Shown: positions 34,001 to 37,000 of the stretch, piece after piece | How positions within the stretch are numbered: position 1 is the stretch's first letter | Layout: each line of letters begins with the position of its first letter | NCBI GenBank assembly: GCA_964199315.1 | Contig: OZ116700.1 | Span: 23,994,001 to 24,058,000 of the forward strand | Direction of reading: 5' to 3' | Source: Orbicella franksi | Taxonomy: Eukaryota | DNA: 64,000 bases | Translations under genes and position numbers: made by a program | The notes under the pieces: model-generated | Told to the model about the DNA's origin: nothing | The model's input: the letters and a program-made list of their open reading frames with translations, nothing else | Databases searched by the model: none

Positions 34001-37000
34001 TGTGGAGATGCATTCTTAAACAGGAATAAACATTGAAGATTGAACAGTCCCCTGCATGTATTTATGTTCCTTGAAATCTATTTATATCCCTTTCGGCATC
34101 TGGGAGTTTAGAGCTTTTACAGCATGGCTCGTTGTTCCCTGGAATAATTTTCGGACCAAAAGACAATGCATAAAACCATTCCAGTGCACCACGTTGGGAA
34201 TGCCCCCACCTCCACCCCCTTATCAAGACTAATTCGGCTATCTCATTTACTTTCTGTCTGTAAAGAGATCGTGTCACTGTAAATAGGCTTGGTGCCGTCT
34301 TGCGCTATATTCGATCTAGACCTAGTGGATTTTTATCATCCCTTGTTTCTCGTTTAATTTCTGCGACTCACAAAGCTTCCAGGACTTGTCAACTGAACTA
34401 TTTCTTGGCGTTGATGTCACTTGTCACAAACCACTCAACATTGTAAACGATAATACGAGCACTTCCCATTAGCACACTGTCGGCCTTGTCGGGTGGTTAG
34501 ATAAGCTCATATCACAATTCTGCTTTTATCTTGGACCCTGGTTAATGACAACTGTTGAAAATTACCAAAACATTCCTAGTAATTACAAATGGGAAAGGAA
34601 AATGTGAAAGAAAAAAATGTCTGTGGGAAAATAAATTCCAGTCTTTTCCGAACTTGGAAGACTGGTCAGACCTATGAACTCATTCAACGCATATGAAATG
34701 AAAAAACACGGAAAACGCAGACGGGGCAAAGAGGAAAGAGTATCTTAAATTACAACATAAACACATCACGAAAAAAATCCCGAGTTTCCGTAAAGAAAGA
34801 AAGAAATGGGTGAAAGGTCACTATCGATGGAGAGTGGATGTTTCGAGAGAAATATTACAACCATTCTGACTCACGGGAATATTATAACCCGGCAAATGTA
34901 GACTGCAATAAAATAAGCTCAGAAGTTTGGAAAACACAGGGAAAGTAGCTACCGAGAAACTGGTTTTGGGTGGGCATACAGCTTTTCCAAATTAACGCTG
35001 TTAATCTCGTGTGCGTTTCACAGGAAAGATTCTCGATTAAATGTTGTAATAGGAAAACCTTATTTGTAGCAAATTTTCGGTTGTATGGATGCGATCTCAC
35101 CGAAAGACTCTAAAGGGAAGAAAAATTGAGCAGCTGTAGGTGCTGCTGGGAGTTGCTCAATGTGCAATCCGCGAACAATCGTATTTGGTATTTAAATGTA
35201 TCTCGGGATTTGTTGCAGTAACATGGCTTGAGGCTCAGTAGGTTTAATCTACCCTTAAGTGGTTTAGCTTACCTGGATTGAAATCGTTGGCGTAAGATGC
35301 AGGAAAACAATAGTAATCACAAAAGCACACCGATTCATTGTGCAATAGAAAGGATGAGCAGCTTTCGGAAGATTTTCCAAACCTTCTTTACGACAGATAG
35401 TTGACTAAGATGACACTCAAGATTAAGATGCGGAGGGTTGCGTTTTCAGCCTCCTCGGGAGAATCTTCATGCATGTTATGAGATTTTTACTTGAGAGGTT
35501 TTGATCGTTTGCAAGATTCTCAAAACATGTCATGCAGGATGACCATAACAACTTAGAAAAGTGTTAATTGAAACCCGATCCGGTAGCTAGCCTTTGACCA
35601 TGTTCTGCGTTTGCGATAAAAGCCCTTGACGATCTGGTTACTGTGTCGGCATCTTCACACCTCTTTTGTACGACAGGACGTGAGAGAAACGAGAATTTAG
35701 AGAAAACGGAGTTGAAAGAAGCTGTCATTTCCATAATACGCTGGTAAAGACTGAGCGAAAATGAAGAAAACGTTTGTTAAACACTCGCTTTTGTAAACAG
35801 CCTGTCAGTATTTTAAAAACGAAGTAGCTCAGCTTGACTGGAGTGTAGTGAACAAAGGTTATCGATAGTCTTCTAACCTTATCATACTCACGGAATGGGT
35901 AATTATAAATTTCAAGTTCAGAGGAACACGCCAAACTTTAGAAGCGTTGTTTATACTGTTAAGTTTTCCCATCAGAAGAGAAACAAATCTGGGACAACAC
36001 GAACGTGGGAAAATTTCATTTCCGATAGGAGGCCAATCCATATCTCTATGATAGTAACTTTTCAATTTCCGCAGTTTCTGTGGAATTTGCTGTTCTCAGA
36101 TCTTATCACAGGTTACATGTTTTCAGGAGTGAAATGATACACTGCGTGAATGACATTACGACAACTTTGTAGACTTCCAAATTAGCGTTATTTGTTTATT
36201 TTAATAAAAGCTATTTTTCTTTCAGTCCAAAACTGTCGATCAGATTTATTAAAACTGAGAATGAAACGATAAATGATGGGCGTTTTGTGAAATACTTCAT
36301 AGCGCGTCAAAATTATTGATAAAACATGTAACAAAGGAATCCTTGCCGCAGTATGTGTGGCTACATATTAGAACAATAATTATCACAAGAAAATAACACG
36401 CAGACAATTTATGGCAGAGCAGTTGTGTTCTAGATAAGAAGGCAACATACACAGCCCGCACACGAAACAAGAAACAAACATTTAATCAAAATGGCAATTC
36501 CTTGATTCAAAAGGTGGTTTTACGTCTGAAGAAAATTACAAGGGAAAACAAATGAAAGTTGTAACCTATTTTTGTTTGAGTGTGATTTTAGTGCCCCAAA
36601 CTATTTTCAGAGTGACGCGATTCCTAAATGATTATTTGTTTAATGCTATCTCCCTGTCAAAAGTCCGATCAAGTGCCGACAAAACAAATTACCCAACTGC
36701 ACAGCAAAGGATGCGATAACAAACGACAAACGGAAATACTCGGACGGTGAATTGCATAAACAAAATGCTTATTCCTTAAATGATAGTCTTGTTAAGACTC
36801 GGTATCAAGATAAAATTGCGAGACGCTTGGAGGACCTAAAGGTTGGGGTTAACTGCGTGAGTTTCTGTTTCTGTTCATCAGCGGCAAATCATCCTGCGAT
36901 TGATAAAACCGCCAAGAAACTTCACAAACCGCTGCCTCGATTTAGCACGGGCACTGTACAGTGCCGGCATGGTTACCAAGGACATTTGACTTGTATATCT

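Follow-up and report, generated by a model that had tools for sequence, protein, structure and literature searches.

A conserved alternative first exon in the largest intron of a perlecan-like coral gene probably encodes the leader of a second, shorter secreted protein

Several basement-membrane genes produce N-terminally distinct isoforms from internal promoters, as is the case for laminin alpha3A versus alpha3B (LAMA3), the LN and SN forms of agrin, and the short and long forms of collagen XVIII. Whether a perlecan-like gene can do the same is the question raised by a stretch of 64,000 nucleotides (nt) of the coral Orbicella franksi (assembly GCA_964199315.1, contig OZ116700.1, positions 23,994,001 to 24,058,000), referred to hereafter as the window, which contains no N. 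The gene in question lies on the minus strand, and its largest intron harbors a short open frame with the features of a secretion signal. Perlecan is a core basement-membrane proteoglycan whose N-terminal part carries glycosaminoglycan or mucin-type decoration, and whose C-terminal part, comprising the Ig array and the LamG/EGF "endorepellin" region, carries receptor- and matrix-binding activities. The analysis presented here points to a gene that probably also makes a secreted protein of about half the normal length. We consider it likely that positions 35338-35273 of the minus strand constitute an alternative first coding exon that is conserved and has a promoter of its own, yielding a secreted perlecan-like protein.

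An exon within intron 26 and its splice to exon 27

Reading and translation of the minus strand at 35338-35273 gave an ATG followed by 21 codons (66 nt, a 22-codon frame), preceded by ACA. The last base of this exon is the G at 35273, where it ends in phase 0, and the exon sits within intron 26 (33106-37939; 4.8 kb), the largest of the gene. The frame runs unbroken from the alternative exon into exon 27, phase 0 to phase 0. An A occupies position -3 relative to the ATG, and upstream ATGs are absent from the 42 nt of 5' untranslated region (UTR) that are supported by RNA. A first-pass annotation of the window had put forward this frame together with its GTAAGC donor, an in-frame stop upstream, a phase-0 end compatible with exon 27, and the enclosing intron, and all of these were recovered on the minus strand. 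A stretch of 800 bases centered on this region occurs only once in the 497-Mb assembly and contains no tandem repeats, and a transposon origin was rejected on these two grounds.

RNA evidence was sought in four runs (X1, X8, X23, and X24) mapped to positions 32700-38400 of the window (5,701 letters). X8 comprises the contigs of a 2024 polyA library from an organism whose DNA runs hold 92-96% of the words of the stretch. One X8 contig, with a depth of 9.74, joins 35273 to 33105, skipping 2,167 nt, and the ends of this joint, CT..AC on the plus strand, correspond to GT..AG on the strand of the gene. Since the two sides of the joint share only 2 letters, a de Bruijn (k-mer) artefact is excluded. 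X8 cover was zero over 35183-35272, the part of the intron just past the donor, and the depth of the bin 35183-35373 (5.15 x 191 = 984 = 9.74 x 101) indicates that cover begins exactly at the donor, at 35273. Thus, of the two junctions foreseen for this exon in the first-pass annotation, the one from 35273 to 33105 was found in the polyA RNA assembly with canonical GT..AG ends, whereas no joint at the alternative acceptor at ~35109 was seen in the mapped runs.

The junction contig also carries a T>C change at 35346, located 34 letters from its end. This position, together with the bin depths, indicates that the contig reaches ~35380 (35379-35380), that is, 42 nt 5' of the ATG. Up to this point, the contig contains neither a second junction nor an acceptor joint 5' of the exon, and no joint from exon 26 to the exon was seen in any of the mapped runs, a negative result of limited power that comes from one contig run. 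The depth of X8 was ~30 over exon 27 and zero over exon 26, its flanks, and positions 36138-37283; contigs cannot show RNA ends, and gaps in their cover prove nothing. Similarly, no joint between 37940 and 33105, which would connect exon 26 to exon 27, was seen in X8, although the contigs of a single run do not allow its absence to be concluded.

The remaining runs contributed less. X1, a random-primed metatranscriptome, gave a low, even, and unspliced cover that resembles DNA and is uninformative. Three RNA runs of another study, X25 (share 1.00) and X26 and X27 (0.50 each), hold sampled words of 35273-35400 and fall below the 5% threshold for the whole 5.7-kb stretch, which is suggestive of cover restricted to the exon. 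The features of the locus are collected in Table 1.

Table 1. Positions in the window of the alternative exon and of the elements associated with it
Feature	Positions	Strand	Basis
Coding part of the alternative first exon	35273..35338	-	Sequence; RNA splice to 33105; conserved in L019, L005, L008, L013, and L002
Splice donor GTAAGC	35267..35272	-	Sequence; RNA joint GT..AG; GTAAGC or GTATGA in 5/5 orthologues
In-frame TAG upstream of the ATG, closing the frame on its 5' side	35405..35407	-	Sequence
Minimal 5' untranslated part of the alternative exon	35339..35380	-	X8 junction contig, colinear with the genome
Intron (2,167 nt) spliced out of the short form	33106..35272	-	X8 joint 33105<->35273
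Exon 26, first half of the laminin-EGF module, bypassed in the short form	37940..38016	-	Pfam EGF_laminin positions 1-27; ends in phase 0
Common exon 27 (47 codons, starting and ending in phase 0), onto which the alternative exon is spliced	32965..33105	-	Pfam EGF_laminin positions 25-49
Conserved non-coding block, candidate promoter and/or 5' UTR	35351..35915	-	Alignments to L002, L005, L008, and L013

Conservation of the exon and of the block upstream

Orthologous introns were fetched via open reading frame (ORF) calls on genomic coral contigs, and two more were obtained from a metagenome scan. L013-L016 are Logan contigs of Tara-type samples, and their sister locus L012 bears the name TARA_..._METAG. 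Conservation in related corals had been set beforehand as a check on the exon, and it was borne out. Indeed, five orthologous coral introns (L019, L005, L008, L013, and L002), one of them otherwise largely unalignable, keep the ATG, an open hydrophobic frame, the phase-0 end, and a GT donor. L019, L005, and L008 belong to close relatives, with an intron identity of ~81-84%; the 22-codon frame and GTAAGC are kept in all three, and the exon of L008 reads MNRCSLAITIVLLHLTPSISIQ. In L013, from a more distant coral, the exon is 75 nt long (+9 nt) and reads MNQYFFPITAAFLHFLIWISPISSR, then GTAAGC. In L002, from the most distant coral, it is 63 nt long (-3 nt) and reads MDSHFVLIMLMILSIAMDSHK, then GTATGA. 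In all six sequences, the ATGs are aligned, an A is found at -3, the frame is open, and length changes occur in multiples of three. Exon 27 of L002/L003, in which the intron measures 6.8 kb, shows 80% protein and 76% DNA identity. L002 also contains, at 5196-5219, a 7-codon upstream ORF (ATG AAC AGA AAG CTT GGG ATA TAG) located ~40-60 nt 5' of the orthologous start codon.

The encoded leader comprises an n-region (M-N-R), a 12-residue hydrophobic core, and a c-region (TPTIS), an anatomy assessed by crude metrics only, namely hydrophobicity and the -3/-1 rule. Cleavage is predicted to occur, likely after T-I-S, and the candidate sites among the orthologues are T-I-S, I-S-S, and S-I-A. The best 10-residue Kyte-Doolittle mean ranges from 2.2 to 3.2 in all six sequences; residues vary and the hydrophobicity of the core is kept, which is the way in which signal peptides evolve. 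To estimate how often such frames arise, a crude filter was applied that retains ATG..GT phase-0 frames with a hydrophobic 10-mer and with small amino acids at -3 and -1. In shuffled introns, 0.05 frames per intron passed this filter, and the real window gave 5 in 128 kb (both strands), while ATG..GT frames as such number 4 in intron 26 and 98 in the window (both strands). Taken on sequence alone, the exon is therefore only moderately improbable by chance, and it is the RNA junction and the conservation that lift it beyond chance. The same filter also picked out a second signal-peptide-like ATG..GT frame at 55904-55987 (minus strand), which is probably main exon 1.

Conservation is not confined to the coding part. 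Outside the exons, the sole significant intron-intron alignment with L002 pairs 35915-35351 (~565 nt) with L002 4669-5244, at 60% identity over 593 columns (E 8.6e-23), and this block ends just before the aligned ATG. The block is 66% identical to L013 (E 1e-83), and identity to L005 and L008 reaches 0.89-0.96 over 35890-35190, the longest plateau of the intron, matching that of exon 27. No consistent reading frame was detected in the block by tblastx, which points to regulatory sequence or UTR, and an exon of another gene as the cause of the conservation was ruled out on the same basis. No promoter-like signal in the CpG observed/expected ratio was found along the intron, the value for the whole window being 0.86.

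The predicted short form and competing explanations

The host gene is perlecan-like, a name based on its domains III-V. The order of perlecan was found, with laminin-EGF and L4 modules (domain III) followed by an Ig array (domain IV) and by LamG/EGF (domain V). Exons downstream of exon 27 matched Pfam Ig_3/I-set, Laminin_G_1/2, and EGF, and the twelve Ig-type exons and the LamG/EGF exons previously assigned to this region were all verified. In a search of a representative library, a LamG/EGF exon matched perlecan-type representatives of 4,166 and 4,303 amino acids (aa), with which the window is colinear, the 12 Ig exons and the LamG/EGF tail lying downstream of exon 27. This search of the representative library returned no close full-length coral model, and the best representatives were 29-39% identical. 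Exon 26 corresponds to EGF_laminin positions 1-27 and exon 27 to positions 25-49; the two are thus halves of one laminin-EGF module, with exon 27 encoding its second half and the beginning of the L4-interrupted module. X8 shows a T>G change at 33095 (plus strand; depth 11.6 of 43) in codon 4 of exon 27, where GCA (Ala) replaces GAA (Glu), and the colony that was sampled may carry this variant as an allele.

In the scheme that we consider likely, transcription would start inside intron 26, driven by the conserved upstream block of ~0.6 kb. The alternative exon would supply its own AUG and a hydrophobic leader of 21-25 residues, and would be spliced in phase 0 onto exon 27. An internal start is suggested by the lack of an upstream junction, by the lack of X8 cover over exon 26, and by the conserved non-coding block upstream, and we infer that the transcript extends as far as the normal 3' end (near 10,500), which would give a product of roughly 2,170 aa. 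The leader would be cleaved off, with IQKHVEGR as the expected mature start, and the N-terminally truncated protein would be secreted. This protein would begin in the second half of the laminin-EGF module, followed by the last L4 cassette, then by 12 Ig domains and by the LamG/EGF "domain V", and would have neither the lectin-like N-terminus nor the mucin-like tract nor the L4 cassettes that precede the last one.

Several observations weigh against this scheme. The junction was found in one contig of one run and is given as "between: not known", so that intervening letters are possible. X8 contigs were also found at 35636-35839 and 35893-36067, in addition to a patchy unspliced cover downstream of ~36070, which indicates that DNA or pre-mRNA is present in the X8 library. 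The raw-read polyA runs X23 and X24 did not cover exons 26 and 27 and contained repeats only. At the sequence level, 8 of the 9 exon substitutions among close relatives are nonsynonymous, and the non-coding flanks show the same degree of conservation, so that short-range conservation could be regulatory and not coding; a second reading frame is also open in 5 of the 6 orthologues because the sequence is T-rich. The product itself would lack the first five cysteines of the laminin-EGF module, including the partner of the sixth, and would therefore contain one unpaired cysteine, a caveat already attached to a start at exon 27 in the first-pass annotation and upheld by the Pfam positions of the two exons. 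Finally, no predicted or annotated protein with such an N-terminus was found in protein collections. Queries with the fused 69-aa N-terminus and with the open frame of exon 27 retrieved only prokaryote-style ORF calls on coral contigs, and the spliced product of neither isoform.

Some of these observations would be accommodated if the exon were spliced without being a protein start. It could be a cassette or "poison" exon that is included after exon 26 and before exon 27, or else the first exon of an unproductive intragenic transcript. The conserved block would then be an intronic regulator of the splicing or transcription of the long form. Consistent with this explanation, the stop 5' of the ATG would end read-through from exon 26, conservation at close range is no stronger in the frame than in the flanks, and unspliced material is present in X8. 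Nevertheless, the RNA contig extends 42 nt 5' of the ATG without an acceptor junction, and exon 26 is uncovered in X8. Moreover, a poison exon needs neither an aligned ATG with A at -3 nor a hydrophobic frame that persists through changes of -3 and +9 nt, and it needs no phase-0 end, yet this end is kept in six lineages. An exon devoid of initiating function is thus considered unlikely.

The locus could also comprise a pair of genes, like the perl 1 and perl 2 reported from Trichoplax (PMC4398486), the upstream one ending near exon 26 and the downstream one starting at the alternative exon, with no long transcript joining exons 26 and 27. Besides this precedent, the X8 data, with a depth of ~30 over exon 27 and with neither the 37940->33105 junction nor any cover of exon 26, are in line with such an arrangement. 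However, a single EGF_laminin module is divided between exons 26 and 27, with matching phase 0, and both exons are conserved in L002 (68% aa for exon 26); a module split in this way makes sense only if the two exons are spliced together, and a lack of contigs in one run does not testify to absence. Two genes therefore appear very unlikely. As for a chance intronic ORF without function, the abundance of short ATG..GT frames and the 5 that pass the filter in the window give it little credit against an exact spliced RNA junction and the conservation of ATG, frame, phase, and donor in five other corals, accompanied by a conserved block upstream, and its probability is close to negligible.

Parallels in other genes and further features of the intron

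An alternative first coding exon in the coral gene would share with LAMA3, agrin, and collagen XVIII a private first exon located in a large intron, endowed with its own AUG and secretion signal, and common downstream exons, as well as a shorter secreted product, here a predicted one, in which the C-terminal modules are retained. It would differ from them in having a perlecan-like host, in an internal start that we infer, and in a short form that begins in the middle of a laminin-EGF module with an unpaired cysteine. By analogy, it would represent a new instance, in a perlecan-like coral gene, of the isoform mechanism known from laminin alpha3A and agrin.

Among perlecan genes, that of Trichoplax was shown by 5' rapid amplification of cDNA ends (RACE) to be transcribed in two units, each from a separate promoter (Warren et al., 2015; PMC4398486). 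As proposed here for the coral, the C-terminal part of the perlecan locus is under its own promoter. In contrast to the coral, the two Trichoplax parts could not be linked, were treated as separate genes, and are split among Ig modules (PMC4398486). In the coral, one module spans exons 26 and 27, so that, unlike in Trichoplax, a long form is expected in addition. In other animals, PMC6266596 describes isoforms of unc-52 and, for human HSPG2, short forms of unclear origin ("miniperl" and the domain V transcripts of mast cells), and PMC10328508 describes trol isoforms of 2,853-4,489 aa. These perlecan genes have several product lengths, some of which keep only C-terminal domains, as predicted for the coral gene. 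Unlike in the coral, the short forms are ascribed there to alternative splicing or to start/stop sites in domain I, or are of unclear origin (PMC6266596; PMC10328508). Among the papers searched and read, none was found that describes, for a cnidarian perlecan, a conserved exon within an intron whose signal peptide leads into domain III.

If the alternative exon acts as proposed, corals would possess a genetically encoded "undecorated" perlecan consisting of the C-terminal half only, obtained by a route different from the proteolysis or alternative splicing invoked for mammalian short forms. Coral gene models with one transcript, and the expression counts derived from them, would then mix two products, and the 66-nt exon allows the design of isoform-specific probes. 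The echo of the two-promoter arrangement of Trichoplax bears, in addition, on the assembly of the gene in early animals. A broader interpretation, which we advance tentatively and regard as possible but doubtful, is that, in stony corals, the 3' half of this locus forms a conserved transcription unit of its own, and that the locus is intermediate between perl 1/perl 2 of Trichoplax and the single-promoter gene of bilaterians. The two products would have different matrix roles, and the short form might be the main or only product in some adult tissues, as the depths of ~30 for exon 27 and 0 for exon 26 in X8 would suggest.

Other features of the intron deserve mention. The X8 contigs at 35636-35839 and 35893-36067 have a depth of 10-11 and lie within and just beyond the conserved upstream block, separated from the junction contig by 255 uncovered nt that show many variants in X1. 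A start near 36070-36140 with a long 5' UTR may account for these contigs, or else a background of DNA or pre-mRNA. Downstream of the alternative exon, a second conserved block at 34391-34590 (identity 0.91-0.96 to L005 and L008) aligns to L013 and not to L002, and X8 contigs cover 34225-34600 at a depth of 3.6-8.2; an enhancer, a further small exon, or simply retained intron are possible explanations. A short peak of conservation is located upstream of the promoter-like block, at 36691-36790 (identity 0.93 to L005 and L008), and 36722-36630 aligns to L013 (73%). Finally, 37284-37856 and 33655-33845 are high-copy segments, with X8 and X1 depths of hundreds to thousands, many rearranged joints, and loose ends. 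Both are absent or unalignable in L005 and L008 (identity 0.00-0.39), 33700-33830 is rich in G/C homopolymers, and the two segments are probably interspersed repeats.

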